From Selaginella moellendorffii (Eukaryota > Plantae > Lycopodiophyta): 64,000 bases of DNA. The stretch lies in NCBI RefSeq assembly GCF_000143415.4, contig NW_003314271.1, positions 186,001-250,000 of the forward strand, written 5' to 3'. The notes under the pieces are model-generated. The model was not told the origin of the DNA and ran no database searches. It worked only from the letters and a program-made list of their open reading frames with translations. The translations under genes and the position numbers were made by a program. Of this stretch, positions 1-52,934 are shown in pieces (the first letter of the stretch is position 1; each line of letters begins with the position of its first letter).

Positions 1-488
1 ACCACTTGAGAGTTCCTTTAAGATTAGTTCCTAGACCTCACTATCCCTACTATACTTTTGGAACCCCTTATAGCCCTCCCCCCCCTGAGGAAGACACACG
101 CTTTGGGCTTTCACCCCATAACCTATATTAGTATTCAGACTTAGTCTCGGACTGGATCTCGGACTTGATCTTGGACACGGTCTCGGATTGGATCTTGGAC
201 TAGATCTTGGACCCGACCTCAAACTCAGTCTTGGACTTGGTCTCAGACTCGGTCTCGGACCCAATCTCAAATCTTAGACTCGATCTCGATCTCGGTCTTG
301 GACTTAGTCTTGAACTCAATCTTGGAGTCGATCTCAGAGTTGACCTCAGACATGATTTTGAACTCAGTCTTAGAGTCACTCTTGGATTCAATCCTGGACT
401 CTGTCCCATTTAATGAACTCTTTATCATTTTGGTCATGTTTTTAGGGATCATTTAGCCTTTGACACCTCGAGAAGTTAGTTCTTTACA
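1..488 (-). repeat. Family B 3' LTR (partial) with degenerate hexamer array
   Basis: Colinear with ~6600-7018; ends TTCTTTACA; abuts PPT. Confidence 0.85.
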
Positions 489-899
489 ACTCCACCACCC
501 ATAGAAGAAGTTCAATGCCTACATTGAACATCTCTTTTTAATCCTAAAACTTGTTGACCATGTCTTTGTGGGCATCCTCCCACTTAGCGGTGTGCCTAAG
601 TTAGCCTTCCTGGCCAAGAGCCCATGACAACAGAGTATAAGTGTCCCTATACCCCTCACTTCACCATACCCTAGTATGGGGTTAGGACTTGAACTTAGCC
701 TTGCTTTACTAGAGGGTTGAGATTCGAACCCAACCTCCGTAAAATACGTTTATAGATTCAACATCCCCATGAGGAGTCGGGTATAGTTCCCCACGCTTGG
801 TCGACCTAGCTAACCCATGCTAAGTAGCTTACCTTTGGCACACCTTCAGGTCCCAACATACAACATTGATAAATTTCTTGAATAGATTCTTTAATGAAT

Positions 900-1456
900 T
901 TTGCATAAGTACATAGAGTTTTATGTTGCAAAAATTCCTCCATTAAATCCCGCGCGTTCGCTAAGTTCTCATTCAGTTCCCCTGTTGCTTTCCAGTGTGG
1001 AAATCCTTTCCACTTCACATGGAACTCCCTCACCTTGCGCCCTTATTGCTTGTTTTTGTGTGCATTGAGGATGGCCTCGACTTCATATTCCTTTTCCCCT
1101 TGGATAACTTAAGATAAAGGTCTTACTTGGTCCTTATGCAACAGATCCTCAAAGTACGGTTTGAGCATGTTCACATGGAACATAGGGTGCATCTTCCCCA
1201 TCTCCTAAGGAAGTTAAAGGGGGTAAGCCATCTTACTAATTCGAGCCTCAATCTCATAAGGCCCCACAAGCCTGTTTAAGGAACTCAAAATCAATTCATT
1301 TCCAGAAATACATGCATTTTTACTTTATGTCAATTTTCAGCTGACCCCACTTGGTAACCTTAGATTCTTGGTATTCAGCCACACCTTATCCCCAGGGTGG
1401 AATTCCACATCTTGGCACTACCTTTGTTGAGCTTATTCCAAGGAATCCCTCACTAG
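900..1456 (-). pseudogene. Integrase C-terminus (GPY/F) and chromodomain remnant
   Basis: Minus-strand translation gives EFHPGDKVWLNTKNL, GPYEI, HPMFHVNMLKPY, EYEVEAILNA...EFHVKWKGFP; stops and frameshifts present. Confidence 0.85.
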
Positions 1457-1651
1457 TGTAAACTTTTGATTTTGGACTTATTGAAAGGTCATCTAGCCCA
1501 ATACTATTCAAACCTAAAGACGCTTAACCCCAAATATCCCAAGACCCTTAACCGATTGGAAAAAGGGGTGCACTCTTGTTTATGGGCTCTTTCCCTTTAT
1601 ATTTGAACCCCATGGATCATCTCTCAAGTCGTTTTTTTTTTGTTGCTTACA
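1457..1651 (-). repeat. 5S rRNA-promoter-containing LTR (Cassandra-like), copy 1
   Basis: TGTA...TTACA termini; homologous to 10056-10249; preceded on the minus strand by the PPT-like GGAAGCATGGTGGAT (1652-1666). Confidence 0.9.
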
Positions 1652-1679
1652 ATCCACCATGCTTCCCTCTCTAGTGAGC

Positions 1680-4600
1680 ATCCCACACCTCTTGGTTCCT
1701 TAGGAACACTTCTTATGCTAGACCATCGTTCTCATATGCTGTCTGCACATCATTCCAAAAAGTTGTTATTGTGCTAAATATTGTCAACTTCAAGTTTGCT
1801 TTTTGACTTATAGCATCTGCTATAATGTTGCTCTTCCCAGATTTATACAGAATCTTGCAATCGAACTCAGCCAAAGCATTAGCCCACCACCCTTGTTTTC
1901 CTCTTAGGTCAGGCTATGACAAGAAGTGTTTTGTTGCCACATTATCCATGTAAACTTTGAAGTGCCTCCCAAGGTAGTGTTGCCAATCTTTGAGCGCTTT
2001 GACCACCACAAATAATTCCTTCTTGTGGGCAGACTACTTTTGCTGAGCTTTGTCCAACTTCTTTGAGAATAATGCAACTAAATGGTTGTCTTACTTCAAA
2101 ACTACACCTAATGCAAAGTCTAAAGTGTCCGTTTCTACCTTGAAGTACTTACCAAAATTTGGTAATGCCAATATGGGAATCTTCTTCAACTTCCCTTTGA
2201 GGTGGATAAATACCACTTTACATTCCACTGTCCATACCATCTTCCCTTTTCCCGTTTGGTCCATTAAGGATAGGACTATTCTCGAATAGTGTTTGATAAA
2301 TTTTCGGTAGTAGTTGCATAGCCCCAACAACGCACTCAACTCGTGTACATTCGATAATCGCTCCTATTCTTGGATCGCTTGGACCTTCTCAGGGTCCACC
2401 TTGAGCCCATCCTTGCCCACCACACACCCAAGAAACTTTACCTTTTGTTGAGTAGAGTCACATTTGCTCTCTTTAGCATACAACTTGTATTCTCTTAGTT
2501 TTTCAAACACCTTCCTCAAGTGTTTAGCGTGCTCTTCTAGTGTTTCGTTATAGATCAAAATGTTGTCAATATAGATAACCACAAAGTGATCCAGATAGGG
2601 TACAAAAATGTGGTTCATTAGTGTCGAAAATGTTGCTGGCGCATTGCATAGCCCAAAGGGCATCATTAGAAACTCAAAGCTCCCATATCTTGTCCAATAG
2701 GATGTCTTCTCAATATCTTCCTCTGTTACTCTAATGTAATAGTATCTTGACATTAGATCGATCCTCAAAAGGTATTTTGCCTTTCCCAACCTATCAAACA
2801 AGTCCTCAATCCTTGGTATAGGGTATTTGTTCTTCTTTATATACTTATTGATCAACTGGTAGTCTATACATATACGTATAGATCCATTTTTCTTTTCCAC
2901 AAATAACACCGGCACCCCATATAGTGACTTGCTCAACCTAACATACCCTTTATCCACCAACTCTTCTAGTTAGCACTTGAGTTCCTCGAGTTCCTTTTGT
3001 TCACATGATAGGGGGGACAAACCACCACTTTAGCACCCTTGACTAACTCGATATTATATTCTATCGGTCATGTCGGGGGTAACCACTCTAGTAGCTTCTT
3101 TGGCATGGTATCTTGAAATTGGTCCAACAATTACTAGATCACTAAAGGTACTTCTTTTGTTCCCATTTTTCTATTACTTCTCACTGAGAGTAAGCACAAA
3201 AATGCTACTTTGGTTCATTTAGTGAGTTGTCCTTTTGTGGACACTAAATTCAAGCAGAAATCTTTAGCCTTACATTGCCCTACCTTTAGATCCTATGCCT
3301 TCACCTTGAATTGTTCTCCCTGTGCATTCGCCAATACCACACGGTTCCTACCTTGTCCATGCAGGGCTACTATAAACCAAGTGAACCAATCCATCCCAAA
3401 AATTACGTCAAATCCCGCCATGTTCAACATGGTGAAATCCATATTTATTTTCCATGTCCTTATTTTGAGTTTTACTTCTCGAAGTACCTCATTGATGCTT
3501 TGGCTACCTTGAACAAACTCTATCGTCCTTGGTTCACCCAACCGCTGCACTGTTAATCCAGCTTGCCGGAATATGTCTACAACCACAAAATTATCCAAAG
3601 CACCCATATCAATAAGGATCTTAACAAAGCTACTTCCGAGCTTCCCTCGGAGGGCTAATAGATGTTGCGAATGACTCTTTACCAAAGTTTTTTGTGTAAT
3701 GAGTAACTTTGAGCTAAAAACTGGATCACGTACCTTAGTTTGGTTTTCACCTGACTTAATGACCATATTGACTCTGGCCTTCTTCGGGTAGGGACATTCT
3801 CTAAAAAAATGTCATGCTTCACCACAGTTGAAGTATACATTGTTCTCACACTACTAGCTAACTTGACTTTTTTATCCATGGTTTGTCCCTTTCCACTTGA
3901 CTTCCCCACATACTTGCTCGTTTGCCACCAGATCTACCTTTTTAAAAGCCTAAGGACTCATTCTTAGAGAAATTCTTCTTGAATTTCCTTTTATCATATG
4001 TCCCTCTTACTTTGGCTCCTTTGCTAAACTTGGACCCCGACCCCATTGTGTTCCCCTTTCGCAGATTATCATTAAAATGCATCTTAATAGCTACATCCAA
4101 TGCTTCTTTGTAGTTGGTTAGGTTCTAATGCATCACTTCGTTTTGAGCCCAAATTTGCAAACCTGATATGAAGGCATGGAATGCATCCATAACACCCATA
4201 TCCATAATAAGTATCCTCTTTGTCATAAATGCATTCACATACTCTTTTATGGTTTTGGTCTACTTTAGCCTACTCAACTCATCCCTTAGGTGCAGAGTAG
4301 CATTCAGAGGAACGTAAGTTGCAAGGATTTTCGCTTTCATCATTTTCCAAGTGGCCACTAGTCCTTTGTTGGCCTCTATTGTTCTCCACCAAGACTTGGC
4401 ATTATCTGCTAAGTATGGTTTTGCACATGGGACATTTTCTGAGCTCGATAACTGCAACATTCAGAAGTAATCCTCCATATCGTAAAACCAATCCTTCGCC
4501 ACCTTATAATCATTCACTCCCTTGAAGACTAGTGAGGGCTTTAGTTTGTACCTGGGAACTGCTTAAGGGACTGATTTCACTTCAGTTTGTTCAATTTTTA

Positions 4601-4931
4601 TTTGTTCCGCCTCAATCCCCGCCGAAGGGTCCATGCCTTCTGTGCTGCCAGCATTTGTAGTCTTTTGCTTTTTCTTTTGCTTTTTATCACGCTTTAGCTT
4701 GCATATAAGAGTCTCCAGAAAGGCATTGATCTATACCAATCATCCTTCTAGAATGTCCAATCAAACCTTGAATGACCGAACCTCACAACTAGTCTCTTAT
4801 TTGGAAGTTTCCTCACTAAAGTCCTCCTTATGCAAGGATTCCTCATCCATATCTTCTTATTCGACCGGAAGCTCTAGCTTTAGAGGAAGTTCTATCTCTG
4901 CCTTGGTTTTTTTACGCCCTGCCTTTACCAT
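1680..4931 (-). pseudogene. gag-protease-RT-RNase H of a chromovirus (Galadriel-like), integrase core missing
   Basis: gag ATG at 4931; AKSWWRT gag motif; protease LIDMGA; RT TRYGSFEFLMMPFGLCNAPATF...VVIYIDNILIY; RNase H VETDTLDFALG; many stops. Confidence 0.9.
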
Positions 4932-4989
4932 CTCCCAACAATTTGCCTCTATCTTTCGCTGGAACTATGGAAAAGGCTTTAATACCAAA

Positions 4990-5183
4990 TATAAGCTTCT
5001 GAATTGGACTTCCCAAGAGGTCACCTAACCCAGTACTATTCAAACTCAAGGATGCTTAACCCCAAGTATCCCAAAACCCTTAACCGATTGGAAAAGGGGG
5101 TGCACTTTTGTTCATGGGCTCTTTCTCTTTATATTCAAACCCTTATGAATCGTCTTTTGAGTCGTTCCCTTTAGTTGCTTACA
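4990..5183 (-). repeat. 5S-containing LTR, copy 2 (PBS on one side, PPT on the other)
   Basis: PBS TGGTATTAAAGCC at 4975-4987 leads into gag; PPT-like motif at 5184-5198 is followed by TRIM internal sequence. Confidence 0.9.
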
Positions 5184-5311
5184 ATCCACCATGCTTCCTT
5201 GCAAGTTTATGCCCTTGTGAATGGAAGTCAAGAGCCGTAGCTCTCCTAAGAGCTCCGCTCTTTTGACACTTTACCCCTCGAGTCGAGCCTAGTTAGAGCA
5301 AATTGGACCTG

Positions 5312-5852
5312 TGTAGCGCACCTTATCTCTCTCCCCTTAAGCCAACTCCCCCTTCAGAGATGTCAATGTCCTCATTGACTATTGACTAACAACCCCTACT
5401 AAGCTTAGGGGAACCAGCACTTCCATTTCCACACTCAATCTACCAATCCTTCCATTGTGTAGACTAGCTATTCCATGTGAGGCAACTAGTCATCCACCCG
5501 TACCGCAGTCCCAAGGTGGATACCTTCGTCCGTGGATACTCCACACAAGGAAGGACGTATGCATGGATGTCCAATACGTACGATTTCAAATTTAGGGGTA
5601 GGAATATCCTTGCTCAAGGGTATATTATATTTTTTTAAGTAGCCACTAATCAATGGGAATCGAACCCGTGCCATTTGCTTCGATACCAATTGTAACGCAC
5701 CTTATCTCTCTCCCCTTAAGCCAACTGGAAAAGGGGCAATTGCTTGATGAGAGAGCCCTTAGTGGCTATTTTATCCCCATTTATCCCCCAAGGTTCCAAG
5801 GATCCATGGTGACAGTATATCCAAATCTTATCCCATGATCACATGCGCTATA
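5312..5852 (-). mobile_element. TRIM with tRNA-type A/B boxes (Helenus-like), nested in the 5S-TRIM internal region
   Basis: TSD ACCTG (5307-5311 / 5853-5857); 5' LTR 5691-5852; PBS TGGTATCGAAGC 5677-5688; 3' LTR reduced to ~35 bp by a deletion at CAACT microhomology. Confidence 0.85.
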
Positions 5853-5936
5853 ACCTGCCAGGTATCAATCAACATGTGGTGTGATTCCACTAAGCCAATC
5901 AATAGAGTTAGACTCAAGACCACTTTAATACCAAAT

Positions 5937-7018
5937 TGTAAGCCACAAATTTTTCCTTTCCAATTTGCTACTTTACCTCATCTATCCAACCACCACAGCC
6001 TTGGCATTAATTAAGTTCCCTCACCAAGATTCCTGCCTATTATACTAGCTTTTACTTGGTCCTACTTGGTTTCAGCAACTCACTACACGAACAACAGAGT
6101 GTTAGTTATCTATCCACGAATTCCCAAATTCTCTTCTAATCTCCCTTCCTAGGTTAGACTAAACTTAAGGTTCGACTACACTCCTTGCAAGCATAAACAA
6201 CCAAGCACACCAAACTTCCAAATTCCTAACATCCCTTGGTATAACAAATCTTGACCATGAGACTTTATAAATCCCAAGCTTTGGGTGCAACACTTGGCTT
6301 CGGGACACTAGGGGGAAAGACCGTGGCTTAACGGCCCAGTATGGGTACCCTTACTCGCCCACTTCCATCTCAAAGGAAAGGCCCAAGCCCCTAGGAAGGG
6401 CAAGGACTAATGAGCCACAAGGTACTCAAGTGGAGCACCACTCCACATGAGCTAGGAGCACCGTAGTCGGATTCCCTTATGGGAGTGGGAACTACTCTTG
6501 GTACTTCCTTGGGTGGCCCTTCCAGTAGCACCCGAGTCCATGCTCACTCCCACCGAAGGCCCCTTAGCCCTAGTTTCAACCTCAAGTTAGTTTGGAAAGA
6601 TCACTAAAGAGTTCCTTCAAGACTGGTTCTTAAACCTCACTATCCCTACTATACTTTGGGAACCCTCTGCAGCCCCCCTAGAGATACATGCTTTGGGCTT
6701 TCACCCCACAACCTGTATTAGCATTCAGACTCGGTCTTAAACTCGATCTCAGACTCAATCTTAGAATCGATCTCGGATTTGATCTTGGACTCGATTGTGG
6801 ACCCAACTTCAGACTCTGTCTCAGACTCGGTCTCGGACCCGATCTCAGACCCAATCTCGGATCTCAGACTCGGTCTCGATCTCAATCTCGAACTCAGTCT
6901 CAGAGTCAATCTCGAACTCGATCCTAGACTCGATCTCATCCGATGAACCCTTTATCATTTTGGTTGTGCTTTCAGGGATCCTTTAGCCTTCGATACCTCA
7001 GGGAGCTGGTTCTTTACA
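5937..7018 (-). repeat. Family B 5' LTR
   Basis: TGTAAGC...TTTACA; hexamer array ~6725-6940; PBS adjacent. Confidence 0.85.
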
Positions 7019-8945
7019 GCAACCTCCACTTAGATAAAGCTATAGTATGGGTACTAACATTTCAACCTCAAACAACTAAGTTAAACATCACCATCCTCAG
7101 CCAAAGCACAAAGCTATCAAAATCAAGTCAAGATCAATGAGATATCACTACTTTCATAAAGTCTAATGAAATGCAACTTGCAACCTAACATAACACTACA
7201 GAAGAAAGGCACAAAGGCTATCGTTCTAGAAAAGTGCAACAACCACTTTTTTATATCAACTCTAAACTCCATCTAGCTCAATTGCAGTTAACCTCAAAAG
7301 TCAGCATCCCTTTCAAGCTATATCATACAAACTACTTACTAAGGTTTAAGCCAACCAAAGTCAACTTGAACCCCTTCATTAATTCATATTGGCTTACAAA
7401 TATGGAATGATTTTCAAACAAAGTGACAAATTTTCAAACCATTAAAAAAGCCTAAAAAAAATTGTAAAAATTTTCTATCCTAAAGAAAGAATGACTCTTA
7501 GTATATGAATACAAACTTTCAAAACTCAACCAACTTCCTCCTATTAACAATTTCACATAAGTTCACCTCAACACTAATTCTTATGACCCAATGGTATGTC
7601 TAAGCATTGAACATCTTGCCTATTTTTTCGACATCTAACATTGACATCCGTAAAATATAAAATGAACATCAAAGATTCGATCACAAAGACAATATTTTCA
7701 AATATTCACATTGCACTAACACTCTTCTTCAATCACTTTCAAAATCTAATATGAAGCGAAAACATTAACAACAAAAACAATATGAAAAATTAAGATCTAA
7801 GGAAAAACTCCTCATCACTCGAAACAACAATGTTAATTCTACTAGTATAAATACTAGTAATGTTAATGCCTCAATTCACACCTTTTCCATCCAATAATTT
7901 ACTCTAAGTGCAATAGATTCACCAACAAGTGAATGTTATAACCCTTTTCAACACCTTATGGGCAAACCCTCAAGAAAATAAGGTACTAATTTAAGCTTAG
8001 CATAATGGATTGTCATCGAGAACTAAGTAAAAGTTACTTCAATACTACTACTTGCAAGTAGCTTCATCATCAACCACTTTGGGGTTGATCATCATTTGAT
8101 CAAGCAACTTCGTAAACACATTGCTCATTATCACATGGATATGATATAAAAATCACAATGACTTGATCATTAATCAAGCAACAACATGAGCAAGTTCACA
8201 TTATTATTTCAAAAGTTTACGTGAGTATTAAATGCCAATTCTATTTGACAAAATGCAATATAAATACCACACTCTACCGATAGAGAGTTATAACACCTAA
8301 CACTACCAACTTTTGTTCACAACACAAACTAGCTCATGTCACTCTCTTTCTAACTAAACTCAAAACTTGATCCAAACACCAAGCTACTCAAGGAGCAATA
8401 GCAAAATTCCCCAGAAAAGAATTTAGCATTGTAACTCAAATCTTCAGTAGCAAAATAGTTTAGTGTTTCACTGTTATCCATCCTATAATTCACCACTTGT
8501 AAGACCACCATAACCAACATGCATCAAAATAAGGATTCTTGATTGCATGATATGAGCAATGAGTTAACATTTCATTGCAAATCATCTTTCCAAAAAAAAA
8601 AATGATTTATATGTTTGATCCTTTATCCCTGAGGATTCTCTTTTCGGTCTCATATTTGACTAAACCTCAAGCTTGCTTTCGCACTACCTTTAGTCCAATA
8701 AATAAAATTTTTATGAGAGAGCGTAGCAATGACTACTTGAACCAATAGACTGATCATGTCTAAGAAGGATCCACTTATGATCATGCCTGGGAAGGATCCA
8801 CTAGTGCCATGCTAAACAGCTATGGACCAGCCTATTTGCCACTCATAACAAACCTAGGGAAGGTTTACTTTTACCCATGGTATATGAAATAACTCATAGA
8901 AACACCAATAGGCTAACATTAATCCTGCCAACTCAAAGTGTAACC

Positions 8946-9850
8946 TATAAACTTCTGAATTTGGACTTTCCGAGAGGTCACCTAGCCCAGTACCATTCAA
9001 ACCCAAGGATGCTTAACCCCAAGTATCCCAAGACCCTTAACAGATTGAAAAAGGGGGTGCACTCTTGTTCATGGGCCTTTTCCCTCTATATTTGAACCCT
9101 AATGGATTGTCTCTCGAGTCGTTCCCTTTGGTTGCTTATAACGAAAGTTGAGAGTCGCAACTTTCCCGAGAGCCCTGCTCTCTTGACACCCTTCCTCTCG
9201 GGTCGAGCCTAGCAGGAGCAAACTAGACTAGTCAGGTTGACCTCTTGACACCCTACCCCTCGGGTTGAGCCCAGCAGGAGCAAACCCTACCTCTCAAGTC
9301 GAGCCCAACAGGAGCAAATTGGACCAGTCAGATTGACCTCTTGACACCCTACCCCTCGGATTGAGCCCAGCAGGAGCAAACTAGACCAGCCAGATTGACC
9401 TCTTGACACCCTACCCCTCAAGTCGAGCCTAGCGGGAGCAAACTGGACCAGTCAGATATCAATTAACATGTGGTGTGATTCTTGACACCCTACCCCTCGG
9501 GTTGAGCCCAGCAAGAGCAAACTAGACTAGCCAGATTGACCTCTTGACACCCTACCCCTCAGGTTGAGCCTAGCGGGAGCAAATTGGACCAGCCAAATAT
9601 CAATTAACATGTGGTGTGATTCCTTAACCAACTAACGAGACCCCTCTGATGCCAAATGTAAGCTCTTAAATTTGGACTTCAAGGGAGGTCACCCAGCCCA
9701 ATACTATTCAAACCCAAGGACGCTTAACCCCAAATATCCCAAGACTTTTAACCGATTGGAAAAGGGGGTGCACTCTTGTTCATGGGCCATTTCCCTCTAT
9801 ATTTGAACCCCAATGGATTGTCTTTATAGTCATTCCCTTGGTTGCTTACA
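8946..9850 (-). mobile_element. Complete Cassandra-like TRIM (5S-promoter LTRs)
   Basis: LTRs 8946-9140 and 9657-9850; TSD TAACC (8941-8945 / 9851-9855); PBS TGGCATCAGAGG 9643-9654; non-coding internal region. Confidence 0.92.
9180..9600. repeat. ~59-bp tandem repeat inside the TRIM (about 7 units, some partial)
   Basis: Unit CTCTTGACACCCTACCCCTCGGGTTGAGCCCAGCAGGAGCAAACTAGACCAGCCAGATTGAC. Confidence 0.9.
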
Positions 9851-10055: not shown

Positions 10056-10249
10056 TGTAAGCAACCAAAGGGAACGACTCAAGAGACAATCCATAAAGTT
10101 CAAATATAAAGGGAAAGGGTTTATAAACAAGAGTGCACCCCCTTTTCCAATCGGTTAAGGGTCTTGGGATACTTGGGGTTAAGCGTCCTTGGGTTTGAAT
10201 AGTACTGGGTTGGGTGACCTCTTGGGAAGTCCAAACTCAAGAGCTTACA
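10056..10249 (+). mobile_element. Solo 5S-containing LTR
   Basis: TGTAAGC...GCTTACA; TSD CATAT (10051-10055 / 10250-10254). Confidence 0.93.
10178..10232 (+). promoter_or_regulatory. 5S rRNA-derived Pol III internal control region (box A, IE, box C)
   Basis: GTTAAGCGTCCTTGGGTTTGAATAGTACTGGGTTGGGTGACCTCTTGGGAAGTCC aligns ungapped at 47/55 with the plant 5S sequence as I recall it; TATAAA at 10105-10110. Confidence 0.9.
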
Positions 10250-12818: not shown

Positions 12819-13247
12819 TAAAAACAGCTCAATCTCCAAATAAAGCTCTCTCTATTACACTTCTTGCTATTAGGGAAATCCTTGTTAGTTTCTTTTCCTC
12901 AGTTTAGTAATATGCTTAAACTAAGTGGGTAGTCTTAGTTAACCTAAATTTGTGCATATAAGCATTACCAGGGTGCATGCTATTGATGCCATATAGACAA
13001 TTTAGGGCCACACCATCCATATGCAATTAAGCTGGCTAGAACCTAAATCCACAAATAGCTATATTTGCCCTTTCACAGAGTGTATGTAGGGTAACAAATG
13101 GTTGCAGATACTCAGGCAAACATGCCCTCATAATGCATCCAGCATAAGTTGCATTCAAAACTTCAATGATTTATGGAGTTTTATAATTCACATCACATAT
13201 CACATTTTGTTACATTCTTCATAATTGTAAGAGCCTTGCTAAGAGTA
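12819..13247 (-). pseudogene. Decayed 5.8S-ITS2-26S(5' end) rDNA fragment
   Basis: ATCCTTGTTAGTTTCTTTTCCTC...ATATGCTTAAACT matches the LSU 5' end (rc); 13107-13247 matches 5.8S (rc) with many transitions. Confidence 0.85.
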
Positions 13248-14122
13248 ACATTTTGGTTTTCTTATATGGTCCTAACTTGCCCTTTAGGACCACAAAGTAA
13301 AAACAACTAGCTTGATAACAACCACTTAGCCTCCAAACATGCCATATCCCTAGCCAATGGTTGAGGGATGATAAGATAAGTGGAAGGGGGCACATATGCA
13401 CAAATTCATGTAGCTAAATTAAGTGTCCTGGCTAGCTATGCCTCTAGACGGCCCTTTAGGAGACAATATAATGTTATGGAATTCCTTATGATGGGGATGT
13501 CTTCCAGAAATTTAGGTTATGGGCTAAGAAGAGCAGTCTTCTAGCCAAATTGGAGGTCATCTTAATTGAAGAAGCATTGGCTCCTAGAAGCTTGGTGGGG
13601 CTATTCTTTCTCCTCCCTAGAGGCAATGCTCTCAAATGATATTTTTACTGTTTTTGTTTCTTTAGCTAAATCCTAAAATTTTCTTCTATTATGAGTAAAT
13701 AACATGTTGCATATTGTGTATATATACTGTAAATAAAACTGAAAACTTTAGATAAGTAATATACCATGACAGGAATATCTATTATAAAATTTAAGAAAAT
13801 TGTATTAGCACATAACATAGACCTCCAAATAAATATGAAGAATCATATAAGTCCATCTTTCCAACTAAGCTTCCAATTCACAAAACAATGCTATTTCCAA
13901 TTTATGTGAATGACATATAAAAGAATCCTCAAATAATCACTAGAAACTGTGGTGAGGGGAGGTGAAGACTTCCAAGGAGATGAAAGAGCCTCTTTAGCTA
14001 CAATAAGGAGACCTTCTTGGTGAAGAGTGCTTTTATTTTAATGGTAATGGTAACTCTTATGCACTTTCTGAACTTAAAAAGCTTAAAATCTCCATGATAA
14101 TTACTTCCATTTCAAAATCAAG

Positions 14123-17799: not shown

Positions 17800-20700
17800 A
17801 TGATCCCTTTGTATAAAGTGTTTCAATTGCTAAACATGCACAATCTATAGAGGATCGGTTTGTTGGACGTCATGTCAAACCTTATAAACCTGTGGTCCAA
17901 CTTACCGCAACACCTGATACAGTCCTTTCTACTGAGCAAGGAGCCCCTTAGATAAACCACATACCGTCAAATGGGGAAAATGGACTAACACCAAGTCATC
18001 CACTTTATACTTCTTAGGTGAATGATGATGGGAGTTGTTGTAGCGCATGTGATCATGGGATGAGATTTGGATATACTGTCACTGTGAATCCTTGGAACTT
18101 TGGGGGATAAATGGGGATAAAATAGCCACTAAGGGCTCTCTCATCAAGCAATTGCCCCTTTTCCAGTTGGCTTAAGAGGAGAGAGATAAAGTGTGCTACA
18201 GTTGTAATGCTGTTATTATCGCACTTGTATGCGACCTAAGTGTTCGGTAGACTCTGCTTGGACAAGTGGAAGAATGATTGTCAAATACTGATCCCACGAC
18301 TTAGCATCAACAACTCATGGCAATTGCGAAAGTAAACCCAGCTTCGTTAGTAATATTGGATCATAACCATATAGAAATTTATATGATGAAGCACCAATAG
18401 AACTTTGCACCCCTGTGATATATGCATACTGAAGAGATAGCAAATAACCATCCCAATCCGAATGCTGAAAGTTCACATACTTCGTGATTATCCTTTTGAA
18501 CATCCGAATGAGCCATTCCATTAGACTATTTGATTGTGGATGATAAACACTCGTGAAAGTGTGGCATATCCCCCAACCAAGACATCAAAACATGAAATGC
18601 CTTAGCCATAAATGCGGGACCATTATCCAAACGAATCCGCTCTGGACAAGAATGCTGGAACACCACTCGATTAAGGAGGAAGTATCCAATAGCAATTGCG
18701 AAGGTGCTAACAAAAACACAAACTTCCACCCAACGAGTTAAATAGTCAGAAGCAATAATAACAAATTCATTGCTAGCAGTCGACCATGGAAAAGATCCCA
18801 TAAGATCAAATGCTGCCAACTCAAACAAACAGAAAATTGCAATTGACTATAACTGTCCTTCCACAGCATGAGAAGGAGTATTATGAGCTTGGCACCAAAC
18901 ACTGATACGCACATACTGGATAATGTCACGTCGCATCTTTAGCCAATAGAAAGACCTGCGCAGCTTCTGGGTCACATGATGATGTCCCATATGCCCACCT
19001 AGAATAGGAGAATCATAGTAGGCATGGAGAAACCGCGGAATAAAGACAGAAGGCACCACCAGCCGTAAATGATTATCAGGATCCATCCCCACAAAATAAA
19101 GAAGACCGTCTTCAAGGCGATATTGAGAATGTAAATGCCGGAAAGGCAAATCATCAATAAGTGATGTAATATTCTCAAACCCATCTCAAAGCCTTTGAAT
19201 CCATGGCTTAATCTTTTGAGCTTTGTAAACCTCATCAAGAGAAGGTAGATCTTGCTTTGCGCCTTGTGGACACTAAACATCAAATACAACAACTACCAAT
19301 GGCATAAAATCTTCATCTAGAAAATCCATAGATGTTAGAACAACAAACTCATCAAAAACATGAGAAGAGAGTGGAGAAGGAAGAGGAGCTTGAAAAAGGG
19401 CATCAACATTAGCCATAAAACTCCTTGGGTAATGAACAACGTCAAAATTATATATTTGAAGCTTCAAAGCCCACTGAGCAGTACAATCAACCAGGTTCTT
19501 TCGCTTCAATAATGAAGTAACAACAACATTGTTACTTTCAAGTAACGTCCAAGAACCATGTAGATATGCATGAAGTTTCTTGAAACCCTAGATTGCTACT
19601 AAACACTCCTTCTTTGTCATGGAGTAGTTCACCTTTGCTGGTTGTAATGTATGGATTATATATGCAATAGGATGGCACTGACTAGACACACTTGGGTTCT
19701 CTTGCATCAACACACCTTCAAGACCAATATCAGAAGCATCCACATGCAAAATAAAAGGTTGAGTGTAATCAGGATATGCCAAACCAGAGGAGTTATCAAT
19801 AGCTCTTTGAGATCCACAAATGCCCACTCACAATCTGGAGACCAGATGAAAGATGATGTTGATAACTTCAGCAATGCTCGCAACGGTGTAGTGCGATCAA
19901 AAAGATGATCCACAAAATGACCAAGATACTACACCTTGTCCAAGAAGTGTTGCACATCATTCACACACTTTGGAATAGAGAACTTTAGAACAGCCATAAG
20001 TTTGTCAAGATCAACCTGCAAACCCTCACAAGAAATACAGTATCTAAGATAAATTCTATCTTTGGACCCAAATACGCACTTCGACTGCTTCAACTTTAAA
20101 CCAACGTCCCATAGTCAATCCAACACTTTACAAATATCATGAATGTGCTCTTCCCACGTCCCCTCTGAGTGGATCAAGACATCATCAATGAAGTCAGTAG
20201 TCACTTCCGACATATCATAAAGAACTTCGTCCATCATCCGCTGGAAAGTTGTTAGAGCATTGTTCAAACCAAACGGCATCACCAAAAACTCATACAAACC
20301 AAATGGTGTATAAAAAAAGGTCTTAGGAATATCTTCTGCAGCCATAGTAACTTGCCGGTAGCCAGAAGCAAAACCTAGCTTGGCGAACTAACGACTTCAC
20401 CCCAGACGATCCAAGAGATCAGTAGTGTGAGGAAAAGGGTACACATCCGGGATTGTCACTTTATTTAATGCATGATAGTCGATGTAGAAATGAATACTCC
20501 CATCAGGCGTCATCACAAGATGAGGTTCACATGCTCAAGGACTCTGCAACTTCAGAATAACACCCTTCTCTAACATCTCCTTGACGTTTGCATGTAAAAT
20601 CTTGATTTCTTTGGGTGACCGATGATGAACAGGAACATTGATTGGATGAGCATCCCTAGTTAGAATCAGATAACATGTGGCAATCTTGGCCCTAGACGAT

Positions 20701-21300
20701 AGGTCAAATTCAAAGAGATCAAAATACTCCTTCATGAGTCAGTTAACCGCTACAACACAAAGATTGTCGAAGGGATCAAAAAAGGGAAGAGCAGAATAAG
20801 ACGGAAACATAAGAGGAAATAGTGGGGGAACAAAAGTAATGAAGGTAGAGGTAGAAATAGAGGGACGAAGGGGTATGGAAGTGAAAGGAATGGATGAAAT
20901 ATATAGAAGTATAAGACAAGGGGGAGAAGCCTCAAAGTCACACTTGGCATGATTGCGTTGCAACCAATCCATACCAAGGATGAAGTCAAAAGCTTGACTT
21001 GGCACCACCCACAATGACTGCAACTCAAGCTTAAGATCGCCCACATGCACAACCAGGTTCGCCTCATCCCATCTACACTTGCATTGTGTGGCAGAACCAA
21101 TTTTCATTCTTTATGGCAACAGTTGTACACATGCATGTGCATGGCAATGGCAACAAGTTGAGTAATAAAAGATAAACTTGAACATATATCAACCAACACG
21201 GAGAGAATAATATTAGACCTCTTGTTATAAAACAAGCTTGGAAAGTAAAAACTGGATGAACCGGTGCCGAGTGAACCCCTTGATGATACTCCCGAAAGAA
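17800..21300 (-). pseudogene. Family H pol (PR-RT-RH-INT) fragments
   Basis: ILGMDWL; TPFGLYEFLVMPFGL..FIDDVLI; LHVDASDIG; GGHMG..CQAH zinc finger; DLMG..DNGPAF integrase core. Confidence 0.9.
18039..18200 (+). mobile_element. Solo LTR of the tRNA-box TRIM family
   Basis: TGTAGC...GCTACA, 162 bp; TSD GTTGT; homologous to 5691-5852. Confidence 0.92.
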
Positions 21301-21379
21301 AGATGGAGGGGTCACTGACTTATTTGTGCAAGATCCCTCCATTACTCACGTGACTCCTCATTTCCCAGATGCATCTAAG

Positions 21380-24300
21380 TGTCGCGAATGTGACTTCGGG
21401 TATCGAAAGTTACCTGTCAACTAGTCCTTACGGACACTCTTACCTTACTGCCACGATGGCAGGAGGTCGGTATTGCTGGACCCGTTATCAGTCTCCGCCT
21501 AAGCTAGTTGAGAAACTGGTCATCACATGTGCACTTAGACCGGAAGGGCACTAAGGAAGGAAATCCTAAGTTGTCATTTAGTCAAGCAGACTTGACACGG
21601 TGATGAGAAACTCATGATGTTGGCTTGCACTTGCTAGTGTTGGGAACCCCCGCGATACTGAGCTTGGTCCCTCAATATCGCTAGATGATAGCTTACCGTG
21701 TCTGCCAAACACCCTCGCTATCATACCCTTTGTGTTGGTCTCATTTCGGTCCCAAATGCTATTTATGGAAAGTGTCTAGATTAGCTCACTTGGCATATCT
21801 ACGGAATGTAGAGATTGGCCTGAACACAATGGTGTTCTTCCCATGTCCAAATTCGCAATCTAAGGACATTCCATGTTTAGTAAGTTTCGGACTTGTCCCA
21901 GAGACTAACTCCTGATACTAAGGGAGGCTTGGGGTGAAAGCCCAAAGCGTGTGTTCCTCAAGGGGGGGGGGCTGTGGGGGGTTCCAAATGTATAGTAGGG
22001 ATAGTGGGTAGGTCGGGCATGGCCGACCAACCTGAGGCATAGTCTAGCTCCCGCTTGCGTGCCTGTCCTTGTTCTGCGTCCGGCTTGGGTCTAAGCCCAA
22101 GTTCCATTCCATGCTAGTTGGTGGAGTACCCATATCCCCACGCTAGGCCACCAGTTGCCGAAATAGCGCCAGACCCTGTTTGGCTCCGTTTTGCGTGCTA
22201 GTCCTAGCATTGGGATGATAGTTGCTTCAGGACTGTTCCAAGTCGCTTCGGGCTCCTATCCCTTCGCTCCTTGGGCTTTATGCTCGGGAGTTGCTCCGTG
22301 GTTCGGTTCCGTCACTCCTTGGCTCCATGCTTGGGAGTTTGGCACCATTCCTTTGTTCAGTGGCCCAAGGCCCTGAACCTCAGGTTCTATGGACACGTGG
22401 CATGGACATGTGGCATGTGACACGTGGCATCTGTCACGTGGCACAAAGAGGGTTTAGGTTCCGCTTCGTGGTGTTATCCTATGGTAAATCACCATAGGAT
22501 AAAGGGTCAAAACCACGTGCGCTACATTTGGTATCAGAGGATGAGTCTCGGCGAGTACTATCCAATGAGATTGGGCAACTAGTCTCGTTGCATACGCAGA
22601 GATGAAAATGATGATCCGAGTGGGTACACGTTTGGTGCAAAGGGTTCACAATTGTTCCTTGGGTATGGTTTTTGTTACCTTTTGTACCGTGATAATGTGA
22701 GCTTGCTCTTGGGCTCATAAGATGGATTGAGTTGTTCCGTTTGCACGAGTTTACGTTTGGGCTCGTGTGTGAGGCACATTAGCAACTCGAGGTTACAATT
22801 GTGAGTTGGCGGGATTAATGTTAGCCTATCAGTGGTTCCATAAGTTGTTCTAGTGGTTCCATGAGTTGTTCCATGTACCATGGGTAAAAGCAAACCTTCC
22901 CTGGGTTTGCTATGAGTGGCAAATAGGCTGGTCCGTAGCTGTTTAGCACGACACTAGTGGATCTTTCCAAGGCATGATTACAAGTGGATCAATCAAGATT
23001 GTAGGGATTAGTCTATTGGTTCAAGTAATCATTGTCATGCTCTCCTATAAACTTTTCTTGGATTGGACTGAAGGCAGTGCGAATGCAAGCTTGAGGTTTA
23101 GTCAAAGATGAGACCGAAAAGAGAGTCATCGGGGACGAAGGATCAAACACGTAAATCATTTTCTTTTCTTGAAGAAATGATTTGCAATGAGGTGTTGACT
23201 CATTGCTCGTATTCACATTATGCAATCAAGAATCCCTATCTTGATGCATGATGATTATGATGGTTTTACAAGTGGTGAGTTATGGGATGGATAGCGGTGA
23301 AGCGCTAAACCATTTTGTCTAGGCTCACTATTGGAAGACTTGGGTTACAATGCTCAATTCTTTTCCGGGGAACCTAGCTATTGCTCCTTGAGTAGCTTGG
23401 TGTTGGGTTAAGTTTTGAGTTTGATCGGATAGCAAGTGGCATGAGCTTGTCTGTGTGGTGAACAAAAGTTAGTGGTGTTGGGTGTTGTAAATCTCTATCG
23501 GTAGAGTGTGGCATTTATGTTGCATTTTGTCGAATCGAGTTTGCACTTGATACTCACATAAACCTTTGAAGTAATGACATAGACATTACTCGTGGTGTTG
23601 CTCAATTGATGATCAAATCATTGTGATTTCCATATCATATCCATGTGATAATGAGCAATGTGTTTACGAAGTTGCTTGGTTAAACGATGATCAACCCCAA
23701 AGTGGTTGATAGTGATGCTAGTCTACTTGCATGAAGTAGCATTGTAGTAGCTTTGACTGAATTCTCGATAGTGGTCCATTATGCTAAGCTTAAGTTGGTA
23801 TGTTGTTCCTTTGAGAGTTTGCCCATAAAATGTTGGAAAAGGGATGTGGCATTCATTTGCTATAACTCATTGGTTTATCCATTAGCACTTGGAGTAGATT
23901 GTTGGATGGAAAAGGTGTGTAGTTAAGGCATTGATATCGTTAACACTTGTGTTAGTGGAAATGGCATTGTTGATTCGAGTGATGAGGAATTTTCCTTAGA
24001 GCTTGATTTTCCATGTCATTTTTCTTGTTAGTGTTTTGGCTTCACATTAGATCTTGAAGGTGATTGAAGAAAAGTGTTAGTGCAATGTGAATATCTGAAG
24101 ATGTGGTCTTCGTGATTAAGCCTTGGATGTTCCATTTGCATTTTACGGATGTCGGTGTTGGATGTCGAAAGAATGGGCAGAAAGATGTTCGAGGCTTAAG
24201 CATATTATAGGTCATGAGAATTTGTGTTGAGGTGAACCTATGTGAAGTTGTTAGTAGGAGGAAGTTGGTTGAGTTTTGAAAATTTGCATTCCTAGATTGA

Positions 24301-27300
24301 GAGTCATTCTTTCTCTAGGATTGGAAGATTTTCCACAAATTTTCTTAGACTTTTCCAATGGCTGATCTGTTGGTCACTTTGCTCGAAAACCATTCCGTTT
24401 TCGTAAGCCAGTACAAACTAGTGAAGGGGTTGGAGTTGACTTCAGTTAGCTTACACCTTAGTAGGTAGTTTGTATGATGCAGCCCAAAAGGGATGCTAAC
24501 TTTTGGGGCTAAGGCAATTGAGTTGGATAGAGTCTGGAGTTAGTGTAGAAAAGTGGCCGTTGCACTTTTCTAAGAAAGGTGACCCTTGTGCCTTTCTTCT
24601 ATAGTGTTATGCTTGGTGGCAGGTTGCACCTTGCATTTTGTTAGACTCTATGAGAGTAGTGAGCTCTCACTAATCTTGACTTGGACTTGGTGGTCCTGCG
24701 CCTTGGCTGAGGATAGTGATGTCCAACTTGGTTATTTGAAGTTGAGATGTTGGTACCCGTACTATAGCTTTGTATAAGTGGAGGTTGTGTACCGACATGA
24801 GTCCATCTCATGGTCTTCGCTTGAGTTTCGACTTAGTTTTGATCATGTATAGCTAGCCTCTTCAAGGCATGCTCAGAGCTAGTAGCTAAATGTATTGGTG
24901 AGTTTATCGCGGTTGAGTTGGATTCGAGTGGTCATTTAGTTTGTGCTTGTCTATGAACCTTTATCTCGTCCTTGAGGTATTACGTTCAGGTTGGACAAGT
25001 GTATGACTCGATGACATGAGTTTAGTGTTTGGGTCTTGTGAAGGCAAGTTGAAAGAGTGATTGTTAGTTGCTTTGCGACTAGTGATTACTTGTAGACTTT
25101 GTCAAAGGCTTTTGATACTTGCTTCACTTGATGATGATTTAGCAGTGATGGGTTTACTTTACCAGATAGTGTTGCGGAGGATCGTGTCATTTGACTTACA
25201 TGGGTTTTCCATGTTGGCATGTCGACTCTACCTCTGTTGATATCATTTGGTTGCGTTTAGTTCATAGTGTTGGATTTCATTGAGTCTTGGACGTGGTGAT
25301 TCACTCCTTGAGGAAGTGTTATCTGTAACTGAGTTTTGCTAAAGGATTGGTCTCGGATACTAACTAAAGTATCTTCGACCTTGGTTAGCTTGGTTGCTAG
25401 AGAGCTTTGAGTGGTGATACATTCGTGCTTACTTCTAGTTTTGTTCTAGTGATGATAGCATTGAAATGATGCTCTGTCGTTGACATTATTGAGGTTGAGA
25501 TTCGAGTGAAATGAGATGTCTCTCCTTAGGATTGATATTGAGTTTCATTAGTCTTAATGAAGATAGTGTTGATGATTTGGCTATGGCTTTGTGTTATTGG
25601 CATTCGTACATTTGCTAGTTAGCAACTATGTTAGCATTCAAACGAGCTGAGTGGCAAGTTTGAGTTAGTTGTGTTCTAGATGAGATTATTTAGTAGGGGT
25701 TGAGCTTTGGCTTTTCCTTGAAAAGTGATTTAGTCGTGGATAACACTAACTTTACAAGAGGAAGAGTTAGTGATTGATATTGGAATGTTTGAATCCTTAT
25801 TGGATTTGAGTTGGAATATATCAATCATTGATGATTCTTCTTGTGCTTGTTATGAAGTGAGTTACGTCTTGCTATAGATGGATTCATGGAGGATCGTTTG
25901 GTGATCACTTGTTGAGCATAGCTTCGTTATGCTTAGCTTTTGGATTGATGCAGATATGCTCTTCATTAGCTTTGGCATTATGAAGTTTAGCTTATGGATG
26001 TGTTAAGGAAGATATTGTGGGTTGCACCATAATTTCTTCTTTAGCATTGAAGTTAGTTCATGTGAGACTTGTGATCATTGTTAGGCAAGACTTAGCTATA
26101 GACTTCTTCGAGCTTTTGGTTCTTTGAGTTTTATGCTCGTTGTTCCATTTGTTAGAAGTTGTTAGGGAAGGCATTTTGGCTGATTAGCTTCAATGTTGAA
26201 GTTGGTTTTTGCATCATTGGTGATGATTGACTATCATCTAGGATAATTGATTATCCTTGTCAAAGGTTTTGCTTGATTATTGTTGGTATAGAATGATTTG
26301 CTATTCTTCGGGATAGTAGATTCTTTCTTCAATGATGATTATGCATTTCTACATTTGATAGGATGATTAATGATCTTTTATGGTGGTTAGTTGTTCTCTT
26401 TGATGGCTTGTGGCTTTTCGCAATATCACATGTTCTTTGTGATTTGCTCTGGATTGGTCTCTTGGGTTTGAGACATCAGTAGGATGTTGCTGACACTTGC
26501 TTAGGCAACTTGAGTTCCTTGGTATTGTTGGCTGGGATCTATTCAGATTGGCTTTTGTGATAGTTGACAGGAATAAGTGTTTGTTGATCTTACCACATTC
26601 ATTCTGTTCTGTTGATTATTGCTCGAGTTAGTTTTGATAGATTGGGATGTTATTTCCTTCGGGTGATACATTTGTGAGCATTGTGCTTGTCAGTCAATGA
26701 TACTTTGTGTTCTTTGAGTTCTCTTTAGTAAGTTGTTTGGCATACTGTCTGCCATCTTCAATAGTGCAATTTCATTATTGAGTTTCCTTGATGATATACT
26801 TGCTATTGAATTTTGTTGGATGGTCAATCCTATGTTTTCCAAACATTATGATCTTGGTGGTTCCTATTTACAATCATATTGGTTTATCGGATGATAACTT
26901 ACTTGGAATACTTTTGTGTTCTAATCTAAGATATCTTCACAGATAATTACATCTCTAAAATATCATTGTCTATGACTTTGATATTGTCCATCTATTGATC
27001 TTTGCACTTGGGCCAGTATAGGCAGATTGGCTTCGGCACTTCGTGTGCATGTTGAAATCTCTAGTCATGGGGTAGCTACTGTCGACTGGTCACATAACCC
27101 GCCTCTCTGTCGATGTTCCTTATTCCGTTGAAAGGGCGTGACCGTGTAAACAACTCTAACTGCCTGTTTACAGTAGTTTATCTAAACCTTACCGACGGGT
27201 TTGGTTTCTTTGCTCAGGAGGGTTGGGGCCTCTAGCTTCTCTCTCTATGTTCCTGCGGGCAGGGCATATCACACTTTTGTAAGCTGGGTGACTCCCAAAG

Positions 27301-36039: not shown

Positions 36040-36440
36040 TTTTTGGGGGGGGGGGGTGTTTTGAAATGTATAGTATGGATAGTAGGTTAGGCATGGTTGA
36101 CCAACTTAAGGCATAATTTAGCTCCCATTTGCATGTCTGTCCTTGTTCTACGTCCGCTTGGGTCTAAGCCTAAGTTCTATATCATGCTAGTTGGTGGAGT
36201 ACCTATATCCTAACGTTAAGCCACCAGTATGCTAAAATAGTGCCAAACTTCGTTTGGCTCCATTTTGCATGCTAGTTCTGGCATTGGGAAGTTGAATGCT
36301 CTAGAACTGTTCTAAGCCGCTCCATGCTCCTATCCCTTTGCTCCTGAGGCTAAATGTTTATGAGTTTCTTTATACTCTAATTTTTTTGCTCCTTGGTTAC
36401 AAGTTTGGGAGTTTAACTCCATTCCTTCATTTAGTGGCCC
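36040..36440 (+). repeat. Family F LTR fragment
   Basis: Colinear with ~21960-22365. Confidence 0.8.
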
Positions 36441-36464
36441 ATTTGATCATAGAGTGTATGTGAG

Positions 36465-52628: not shown

Positions 52629-52629
52629 T

Positions 52630-52894: not shown

Positions 52895-52934
<40 letters not shown>

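Follow-up and report, generated by a model that had tools for sequence, protein, structure and literature searches.

Organization of the composite element

A dead B-family chromovirus in Selaginella moellendorffii bears Cassandra-like 5S LTRs on both sides of its gag-pol, and with moderate confidence we interpret this composite as a by-product, in which the chromovirus acquired, at the DNA level, two incomplete copies of a 5S-TRIM. The composite was examined in one copy, that of the window analyzed here, which comprises 64,000 nucleotides (GCF_000143415.4, contig NW_003314271.1, positions 186,001-250,000 of the forward strand). On the minus strand, the order is B LTR, PBS, 5S-TRIM internal domain, PPT, 5S-LTR a and a second PBS, followed by gag-PR-RT-RH, the same 15-nt PPT motif and 5S-LTR b, and finally by the integrase C-terminus, the chromodomain and a B LTR. 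All features listed in a preliminary description of this DNA were present on the minus strand, at positions that were exact or a few bases off. The apparent LTR-PBS-gag/pol-PPT-LTR form arises because two TRIM blocks flank gag-pol. In both blocks the 5' LTR is missing, the end coincides exactly with an LTR terminus and 13-nt direct repeats lie on either side, which suggests that capture or recombination of partial TRIM DNA lies behind both. At least four separate 5S-TRIM events were found within 11 kb around the composite, and five of the six 5S-LTRs in the window fall in 1.4-10.3 kb; three TRIM events sit 0-266 nt downstream of the 5' LTRs of B/Y-type elements.

The B-family host element

The B copy (7018 to beyond 1, minus strand, as are all features below unless noted) is an old, dead chromovirus nested in a Y-family element. 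Its 5' LTR (5937..7018; TG...CA) matches the 3' LTR at 3-488 (78%) as well as G-family LTRs, contains a minisatellite and ends in GGCTTACA, after which the PBS follows. Similarity of the LTR pair extends ~15 nt upstream, and the LTR may start as far as ~7035. The 3' LTR (1..488) is cut by the window end and is 78% identical to its 5' partner; the half-distance of the pair is 0.136. An untranslated 3' region (489..922) ends in the B PPT (...GGGTGGTGGAGT).

The gag-PR-RT-RNase H part of the polyprotein gene (1667..4932) was delineated by Pfam, tblastn with relatives and counts of breaks. Pfam matches were obtained for gag (~4415-4293), protease (RVP_2, ~3634-3323), RT (RVT_1, ~2900-2421) and RNase H (RT_RNaseH_2, ~2234-2100). 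The same gene continues at 923..1456 with the integrase C-terminal region and the chromodomain, also interrupted by in-frame stops; the former was aligned by database relatives, and the Chromo match (~1027-923) scored 25.2 against a cut-off of 25.1. The Pfam domains thus follow the chromovirus order PF03732, PF08284, PF00078, PF17919 and PF00385. The B copy has neither the zinc finger nor the catalytic core of integrase, and a single deletion of ~285-340 integrase residues spans the two. The gag-pol is further broken by at least 26 in-frame stops and ~3 frame changes. The element is collinear on either side of each block, running from gag to RNase H and then from the integrase C-terminus to the chromodomain, and the best database relatives are common to both halves of the polyprotein (Spearman 0.68, p = 0.006).

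The two TRIM blocks

Block 1 (5922-4990) is bracketed by two copies of the 13-nt direct repeat TTTGGTATTAAAG, which consists of a 2-nt spacer and the first 11 nt of a tRNA-iMet-type PBS. The left copy (5923..5935), recognized by its PBS match, and the right copy (4977..4989) agree at 13/13 positions and are the two exact matches in the window, against 0.01 expected. Relative to the canonical Cassandra PBS (PMC7215508), the PBS in TTTGGTATTAAAG carries two transitions, identical in both copies. Parallel changes at a single methylated CAG site could account for this identical decay.

The 5' part of the TRIM internal domain (5862..5922) is TRIM-like from the first post-PBS base onward (z = 12.7 when aligned with what follows the PBS in the intact TRIM). 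The domain is then split by a nested short LTR-like element, X (5313..5861), with CAGG on both flanks. Element X has an LTR-like block (5854-5691) and a PBS-like site of its own (~5689-5678), its 3' end repeats only the last ~34 nt of the LTR-like block, and its 5687-5854 portion shares 93% identity with 18204-18037. The TRIM picks up again at precisely 5312, and this 3' part (5199..5312) matches the last internal part of the intact TRIM (z = 20.4). It is followed by the 15-nt PPT motif GGAAGCATGGTGGAT (5184..5198), directly upstream of the Cassandra-like 5S-LTR a (4990..5183; TGTAAGC...GCTTATA), which has a box A/box C pattern and an Rfam 5S_rRNA score of 29.7 bits. LTR a lacks a 5-bp TSD, and its identity as a solo LTR was ruled out.

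Past the second PBS, a short leader (4933..4976) extends to the first ATG and has a T4 run 15 nt downstream of 5S-LTR a; the ATG expected shortly past this PBS was found ~43 nt further on. The leader had been described as similar to that of family G. This holds for the 11 nt right after the PBS (10/11 matches), and the similarity of the whole leader is non-significant (z = -0.7 and 1.4). At the block 1 junctions, family identity changes within the 11-12 nt PBS: the spacer is of the same type as the LTR on its left, and the post-PBS bases are of the same type as the domain on their right.

Block 2 (1666-1457) begins with the second copy of the 15-nt PPT motif (1652..1666), directly upstream of 5S-LTR b (1457..1651). 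The two motifs ahead of the 5S-LTRs, previously noted as the same, are an identical 15-mer and its sole two exact copies in the window. LTR b extends in full to the 3' terminus (...TTTACA), where it abuts integrase sequence with no PBS in between. The left copy of the bracketing repeat (CACTAGAGAGGGA, 1664..1676) overlaps the PPT motif by its last 3 nt, and the right copy (CACTAGTGAGGGA, 1446..1458) runs from the terminal CA of LTR b into the integrase C-terminal sequence. The copies agree at 12/13 positions and are just two matches in the window. A 3-nt overlap (GGA) is present at the linker/PPT junction.

The 5S-TRIM family of the window

The family comprises six LTR copies of 192-195 bp in the 64-kb window. 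Its reference copy, an intact 5S-TRIM of 905 bp (9850-8946), consists of an LTR, a PBS, a 520-nt internal domain with ~62-nt tandem repeats and a second LTR, and is flanked by the 5-bp TSD GGTTA. Its PBS has two mismatches to the TGGTATCAGAGC type. The short LTR pair, PBS, PPT, non-coding interior, 5-bp TSD and size of ~1 kb or less are those of a TRIM. A solo 5S-LTR (10056..10247, plus strand) carries the 5-bp TSD CATAT and has the top 5S_rRNA score of the family.

Searches with the Rfam 5S_rRNA model gave 37.9, 29.7, 22.4 and 20.2 bits for four LTRs (best E 7.8e-6), all below the gathering score of 38; the alignments covered the full model with an internal gap. The Pol III promoter pattern of Cassandra (box A, 18 nt, box C; PMC7215508) was found in five of the six LTRs with 2-3 mismatches and exact spacing, against 0.01 expected by chance. 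Since the Rfam scores are sub-threshold, we count the LTRs as 5S-derived on the combined evidence, not on Rfam alone, and the 5S origin proposed earlier is supported on this footing.

The family resembles Cassandra TRIMs (Kalendar et al. 2008; 2020 PMC7215508) in its 192-195 bp LTRs with a 5S segment and boxes A and C 18 nt apart, its tRNA-iMet-type PBS, non-coding internal domain, 5-bp TSD and size below 1 kb; as in fern Cassandra (PMC7215508), the PBS lies a few bases past the 5S part. It differs in that the 5S part is short of ~32 model positions and falls just under the Rfam gathering threshold, and both boxes have a mismatch to the published pattern. Moreover, no tandem array was seen, and partial copies are embedded in a coding element.

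Possible routes of acquisition

Nested LTR retrotransposons are trimmed by illegitimate recombination, and retroelement cDNA fragments are captured at repaired breaks. The composite shares with these processes the partial inserts, the deletion in the host element and the short direct repeats at junctions, but it keeps both repeat copies, and one insert is exactly in register at the PBS. From the observed anatomy, repeats, missing integrase, decay, lack of a TSD and TRIM density, we infer DNA-level routes by which the B copy would have gained both TRIM pieces after or around its own insertion. Block 1 would be an "internal domain-PPT-3' LTR" piece set in register at the PBS of the B element, and therefore has a PBS on both sides. 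The shared 20-nt LTR end plus PBS would permit two routes. In one, the B element would have recombined homologously with an ectopic copy or with a TRIM form that has one LTR; in the other, a TRIM would have integrated in the ordinary way into the PBS and then lost its 5' LTR between short repeats. Block 2 would be "15 nt of PPT + 3' LTR", whose right end, an exact LTR terminus, meets the integrase C-terminal region and whose left side stands in place of ~0.9 kb of integrase; it may have arisen by end-joining capture, or by integration and then deletion with a short templated copy. An insert in register at the PBS, as block 1 is, would also be expected from strand-transfer errors on co-packaged RNAs, and no simple route fully accounts for the 13-nt repeat that brackets block 2.

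LINE-type retroposition of a TRIM Pol III transcript, a candidate raised by the 13-nt repeats and the 5' truncation, was rejected because each block includes an entire LTR and stops precisely at its terminus, where a DNA copy ends. The Cassandra transcript as described does not end at the LTR terminus.

Template switching and assembly error

The preliminary description favored template switching between co-packaged RNAs. Such a reverse-transcription chimera would derive from 5S-TRIM and B RNAs that switched at the shared PBS in one cycle to give B LTR-PBS-TRIM domain-PPT-5S LTR-PBS-gag, may include a further switch, at a microhomology, that led from the TRIM PPT region to the RNase H-integrase linker, and would have integrated as a B-LTR-flanked unit. 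The 11-12 nt PBS contains both block 1 switches, where the spacer and post-PBS bases each retain their family type, and the shared PBS, LTR end, PPT/LTR start and leader-like domain would favor co-packaging and homologous switching. The GGA overlap at the linker/PPT junction fits a microhomology switch, and LTR b matches the B LTRs in age. However, at the 3' terminus of the complete internal LTR b, integrase sequence follows directly with no PBS in between; such a junction is that of a DNA end and cannot result from template switching. LTR a also appears younger than the B LTRs. In addition, the PBS is recopied from tRNA in each cycle, yet both PBS copies bear the same two changes, and several rare switches would be required within one cycle. 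Template switching thus fits the first junction, inside the PBS, but cannot alone explain the second, and we regard the chimera as improbable, at roughly one chance in four. The first junction is equally predicted by homologous recombination of DNA and by integration with subsequent deletion.

False joins through the 194-bp 5S-LTR repeats are quite improbable: six LTR copies do lie within 64 kb, but with 18% of sites different LTRs a and b would not collapse, both junction pairs are precise, the B element stays collinear, and the 15-nt PPT junction and 13-nt bracketing repeats would not be created by a false join.

Evidence against a coding 5S-LTR element

The other model put forward earlier, a genuine coding 5S-LTR retrotransposon lacking integrase in which 5183-1457 once transposed as a unit, accords with the formal LTR-PBS-gag/PR/RT/RH-PPT-LTR order and with the 15-nt PPT motif of the TRIM. 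We found no TSD around 5183-1457 (TGGAT upstream versus CTAGT downstream), whereas true insertions of the 5S family carry 5-bp TSDs (GGTTA, CATAT). LTRs a and b are 81.9% identical, compared with 88.5% for a-c and 88.0% for a-e, and no sister signal was detected for the a/b pair (K2P 0.22; two exclusive shared sites, not above other pairs). The star-tree branch lengths, 0.09 for LTR a and 0.12 for LTR b, overlap; age is therefore indecisive as to whether a and b were acquired jointly or separately. LTR a was younger than the B LTRs in 94% of bootstraps, a weak difference, and LTR b equals the B LTRs in age.

The internal region of the composite contains 16 runs of at least four T, the earliest of them 15 nt past the LTR, and Pol III starting at the 5S promoter could therefore not transcribe across it; the 520-nt internal domain of the TRIM contains none. 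The interval 5183-1457 also lacks a complete open gag-pol with integrase, and its flanks are two collinear parts of one B chromovirus. The RT piece had no relative closer than ~63% identity in two protein databases, where its best relatives were 60-63% identical and bore generic names or none, with no named chromovirus clade reference such as Galadriel among the hits, and the contigs of the two best contain ordinary chromoviruses with long TGTCG...CGACA-type LTRs (0.8-1.1 kb among the nearest relatives), full integrase and no 5S sequence. In a metagenome scan for box A, box C and PBS, none of the 8 loci had a Ty3-type pol and one had weak LTR similarity; no second copy of either composite junction occurred among these relatives and loci. 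With no TSD, no sister LTRs, a broken gag-pol, T runs and collinear B flanks, a coding 5S-LTR element is very improbable.

Replication signals shared with the B/G lineage

We compared the 5S-TRIM with the LTR families of the window. The PPT/LTR-start junctions of 5S-LTR a and the B 3' LTR agree at 20/22 nt (z = 4.1; 2/500 shuffles reach the score). The LTR end GCTTACA plus PBS is common to the TRIM, B and G and is not found in families Y, R and Q. The TRIM internal domain, collinear with the G leader from the PBS onward (z = 4.9), is a distant homologue of it. The LTR bodies of the 5S-LTR and B/G showed no similarity. A vestigial 5S part at the B/G LTR ends was ruled out by local alignments to the 5S-LTR, which scored at shuffle level, and a likeness of the 5S-LTR and B LTR heads past the first ~22 nt was inconsistent between copies and was dropped.

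Termini, PBS, PPT and internal sequence, by which a TRIM is linked to its helper (Gao 2016), are thus shared between the 5S-TRIM and B/G, and these signals point to the B/G chromovirus lineage as a candidate helper. In the OsajRetroS10/OsajLTRA10 pairs (Gao et al. 2016, PMC4717578), the partner was inferred from shared LTR and internal sequence; the window TRIM and B/G likewise share the PPT/LTR start, LTR end, PBS and a leader-homologous domain. In contrast to those pairs, the LTR bodies are unrelated (0.19 kb for the 5S LTR versus 1.1-1.3 kb for B/G), the similarity is limited to termini and leader, and the coding copy is dead and lacks the integrase core. The composite also resembles tandem TRIMs and three-LTR concatemers (Gao 2016; Kalendar 2020; PMC13570524) in its LTR-internal-LTR-internal-LTR order with a shared middle LTR and in pointing to recombination between related elements, but in the composite a TRIM domain is joined to a heterologous chromovirus body; the outer LTRs are of the B family, and the middle one is a 5S-LTR.

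A link between the chromovirus and 5S-TRIM replication, drawn earlier from the composite, gains independent support from the shared cis-signals; it rests on one dead copy. The composite or its PBS junction might be a fossil of co-replication, in which 5S-TRIM and chromovirus RNAs were co-packaged, B/G served as helper of a Cassandra-type TRIM and the TRIM descended from B/G, although we consider this unlikely. It is similarly doubtful that the TRIM is an "LTR-PBS-leader | LTR" form whose gag-pol was looped out between two similar junction sequences.

The statement in the preliminary description that the mobilizing partner of Cassandra is not established agrees with a recent account in which no partner or helper retrotransposon is indicated (Kojima 2024, PMC10886601). 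Cassandra elements are found across vascular plants. The window holds no coding 5S-LTR element, yet it holds physical recombinants between 5S-TRIM and chromovirus, and, as judged from sequence similarity, a Cassandra-like family that shares its PPT/LTR start, LTR end, PBS and internal domain with a neighboring chromovirus-linked LTR lineage. The open helper question now becomes one for a genome-wide census: is there a gag-pol lineage with these termini and this leader, and do bursts of that lineage coincide with bursts of the TRIM?

Organization of the composite

The minus-strand reading, self-comparison and alignments bore out the layout given in the preliminary description. B, an old chromovirus copy, begins with a B LTR (7018-5937, minus strand; termini TGTAAAGAAC...GCTTACA) that ends in the terminal sequence GGCTTACA and is followed by the PBS. 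Its partner LTR (minus strand) starts at 488 and leaves the window, the pair being 78% identical (K2P 0.27). After the first PBS lies a true internal domain of a 5S-TRIM, a Cassandra-like short retrotransposon, which aligned with the intact 5S-TRIM at 9850-8946 (z=12.7 for the 5' part and z=20.4 for the 3' part), and in the alignment its TRIM-like character begins at the first post-PBS base. Nested in this domain, and splitting it, is a short LTR-like element (about 5861-5313, minus strand) with its own PBS-like site and CAGG flanks. Next in order are a 15-nt PPT motif, 5S-LTR a (5183-4990, minus strand), a second PBS, a 44-nt leader and a polyprotein gene with gag, protease, RT and RNase H domains; RNase H is followed by the identical 15-mer, 5S-LTR b (1651-1457, minus strand), the integrase C-terminal region and the chromodomain. 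These are the only two exact copies of the PPT motif in the window.

The nested element belongs to a short LTR-like family, X, with copies at 5313-5861 (minus strand) and 18037-18204 (plus strand), which share a 164-bp block ending in GCGTTACA and followed by a PBS-like site. The family X motif CCCCTTTTCCAGTTGGCTTAAGGGG is reminiscent of the matching part of the 5S-LTR, and the second copy adjoins another Ty3-type pol (18219-21050), at the 3' end of the latter.

The 5S-LTR family is Cassandra-like

The window contains six copies of the 5S-LTR, and the family is Cassandra-like. The Rfam 5S_rRNA model scored 37.9, 29.7, 22.4 and 20.2 bits on 5S-LTRs, against a gathering score of 38, and the box A-18 nt-box C pattern of Kalendar et al. 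2020 (PMC7215508) matched five of the LTRs with 2-3 mismatches each (chance expectation 0.01). As in fern Cassandra (PMC7215508), the PBS lies a few bases beyond the 5S part. The intact 5S-TRIM copy is 905 bp long with the TSD GGTTA, and a solo 5S-LTR has the TSD CATAT.

The internal domain of the intact TRIM (9139-9658, minus strand) consists mostly of ~62-nt tandem repeats, of which the copy within B has one unit. Twelve nucleotides after the PBS are missing from the intact TRIM and are present in both the copy within B and the leader of G, an LTR family related to B. In metagenome contig Ga0068630_1001449 (L008:6027-6419), two stretches ~325 bp apart weakly resemble the 5S portion of the LTR, and a PBS-like site follows one of them; this region could be a Cassandra-type element, or else a 5S array, of a different plant. 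Fragments derived from rDNA (two 5.8S matches and one LSU piece) and the oldest 5S-LTR copy, f, lie on the minus strand at 33983-34338, 34241-34435, 36437-36590 and 13106-13247. Copy f, which is without a clear TSD, overlaps the LSU match at the upstream end of that match. Segments containing 5.8S sequence recur (13143-14030 versus 36486-37248), as if they were parts of a repeat.

Both TRIM pieces were most likely acquired at the DNA level

We examined the junctions of the two TRIM pieces in B, one at the B PBS (block 1, 5922-4990) and the other beside the integrase C-terminus (block 2, 1666-1457). The bases that separate LTR from PBS at block 1 keep the type of the LTR to their left: the B LTR has a G-like spacer of three bases and the 5S-LTR a TRIM-like spacer of two. 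The post-PBS bases, in turn, match the domain on the right, which places the exchange inside the PBS. Block 1 has the 13-mer TTTGGTATTAAAG on each side, and the window contains no further exact copy; both copies differ from the canonical PBS by the identical two transitions. At block 2, the exact 3' terminus of the LTR meets integrase sequence, with the PBS absent. This block is bracketed by CACTAGAGAGGGA and CACTAGTGAGGGA, which have no other match in the window; the left repeat overlaps the PPT motif by GGA, and the right repeat starts with the LTR terminal CA. These junction sequences show that both blocks are 5'-truncated TRIM pieces with the exact LTR terminus, a DNA-copy end, and with 13-nt direct repeats around each. 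No second copy of the junctions was found; a metagenome was scanned too, uninformatively.

Both blocks were most likely acquired at the DNA level. By the routes we infer, block 1 could have arisen by recombination through the ~20-nt identity of LTR end and PBS, or by integration into the PBS, after which the 5' LTR of the TRIM was lost between short repeats. For block 2, TRIM DNA may have been integrated or end-captured, at the cost of ~0.9 kb of integrase and with a brief templated duplication. In the star tree, LTR a has a branch of 0.09, versus a half-distance of 0.136 for the B LTRs, and is younger in 94% of bootstraps; the branch of LTR b is 0.12, making it as old as B. This dating is weakly consistent with a DNA-level route for block 1. 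The preliminary description had favored template switching, in which strand-transfer errors between co-packaged 5S-TRIM and chromovirus RNAs made the composite; this less probable rival predicts the same sequence at block 1 but leaves the DNA-end junction of block 2 unexplained.

The other proposal, that 5183-1457 is a single coding 5S-LTR element without integrase, was rejected by tests on TSD, LTR kinship, flanks and T runs. No TSD surrounds 5183-1457 (TGGAT versus CTAGT). LTRs a and b are 81.9% identical, versus 88% between LTR a and two other copies, and they share two sites exclusively, not above other LTR pairs. To the left of LTR a lies the TRIM internal domain, and to the right of LTR b the same polyprotein goes on in the correct order; the best database relatives of RT/RNase H and of the integrase C-terminus plus chromodomain agree (Spearman 0.68, p=0.006). 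The internal region contains 16 T runs (>=4), the first of them 15 nt past LTR a, versus none in the 520-nt internal domain of the intact TRIM. Judged from sequence, Pol III transcription started at the 5S promoter would fail to span gag-pol; the same general argument on Pol III transcription was made by Kojima 2024 (PMC10886601).

Two TRIM pieces in one element

B is nested within a Y-family LTR element (5' LTR 11337-10252). This element also holds the intact TRIM and the solo 5S-LTR, which accounts for the clustering of five of the six 5S-LTRs, from at least four events, within 1.4-10.3 kb. Measured downstream from the end of a B/Y-type 5' LTR, three TRIM events lie at distances of 0, ~61 and ~266 nt. 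Given this clustering, two TRIM pieces in one 7-kb element, one of them beside the PBS, are unsurprising.

In the Y4 leader (10309-9851, minus strand), the solo 5S-LTR and the intact 5S-TRIM lie ~61 and ~266 nt, respectively, downstream of the Y4 5' LTR end; together with block 1, these cases suggest a preference of the 5S-TRIM family for sites immediately downstream of 5' LTRs. The segments 7015-7498, 52137-52629 and 24269-24791 are homologous copies of one ~490-bp Y-type internal segment, into which B and the G-family element G1 inserted ~26 bp apart in homologous coordinates, and B and G1 may have a common target preference.

The chromovirus copy is dead

The coding part contains at least 26 in-frame stops, counted within spans alignable to relatives (7 in gag, 5 in the protease region, 1 in RT, 5 in RNase H and the linker, and 8 in the integrase C-terminus and chromodomain), and about three frame changes in gag-pol. 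A single deletion of about 285-340 residues removed the integrase zinc finger and catalytic core; in related elements this exact position, from RNase H to the SH3/chromo part, is occupied by Integrase_H2C2 and rve. Because of these lesions, the copy is dead and cannot itself be the autonomous partner of 5S-TRIMs, the role for which it had been put forward. No second copy of the gag-pol family was found, and the best database RT identity was ~63%.

TRIM and the B and G families have signals in common

Across PPT and LTR start, TRIM and the B 3' LTR agree at 20 of 22 nt (z=4.1; score reached by 2 of 500 shuffles). The LTR end GCTTACA plus PBS is common to TRIM, B and G and is not found in families Y, R and Q of the window. 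From the PBS on, the TRIM internal domain aligns collinearly with the leader of family G, as a distant homologue (z=4.9). By sequence comparison, TRIM and the B/G families have these cis-signals in common. G1 (52630-59794, plus strand; LTR pair 91% identical) and a second G copy (60735-63999, plus strand) have long LTRs with a GAGACC/GAGTCY minisatellite, a PBS and the leader homologous to the TRIM internal domain. Among the coding bodies of the window, this chromovirus alone is linked to B/G-type LTRs, and no Ty3-type pol was found in the G and Y elements.

Y1 (21378-28678, plus strand) is a 7.3-kb LTR element with 1149-bp LTRs, a canonical tRNA-iMet-type PBS and no ORF of at least 100 residues. 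It resembles a large non-autonomous (LARD-like) element that was mobilised recently. Its LTRs are 99.2% identical despite the lack of such an ORF and of a Ty3-type pol, so a helper has recently been active; Y1 thus implies an active helper in this genome.

Gao et al. 2016 (PMC4717578) judged TRIM partners by shared termini and internal sequence. The proposed tie of the chromovirus to 5S-TRIM replication retains the PPT/LTR start, LTR end, PBS and leader in common with B/G, and loses this dead copy as the partner. No partner is indicated for Cassandra (PMC10886601), and the cis-signals that TRIM has in common with the B and G families are worth keeping in view.
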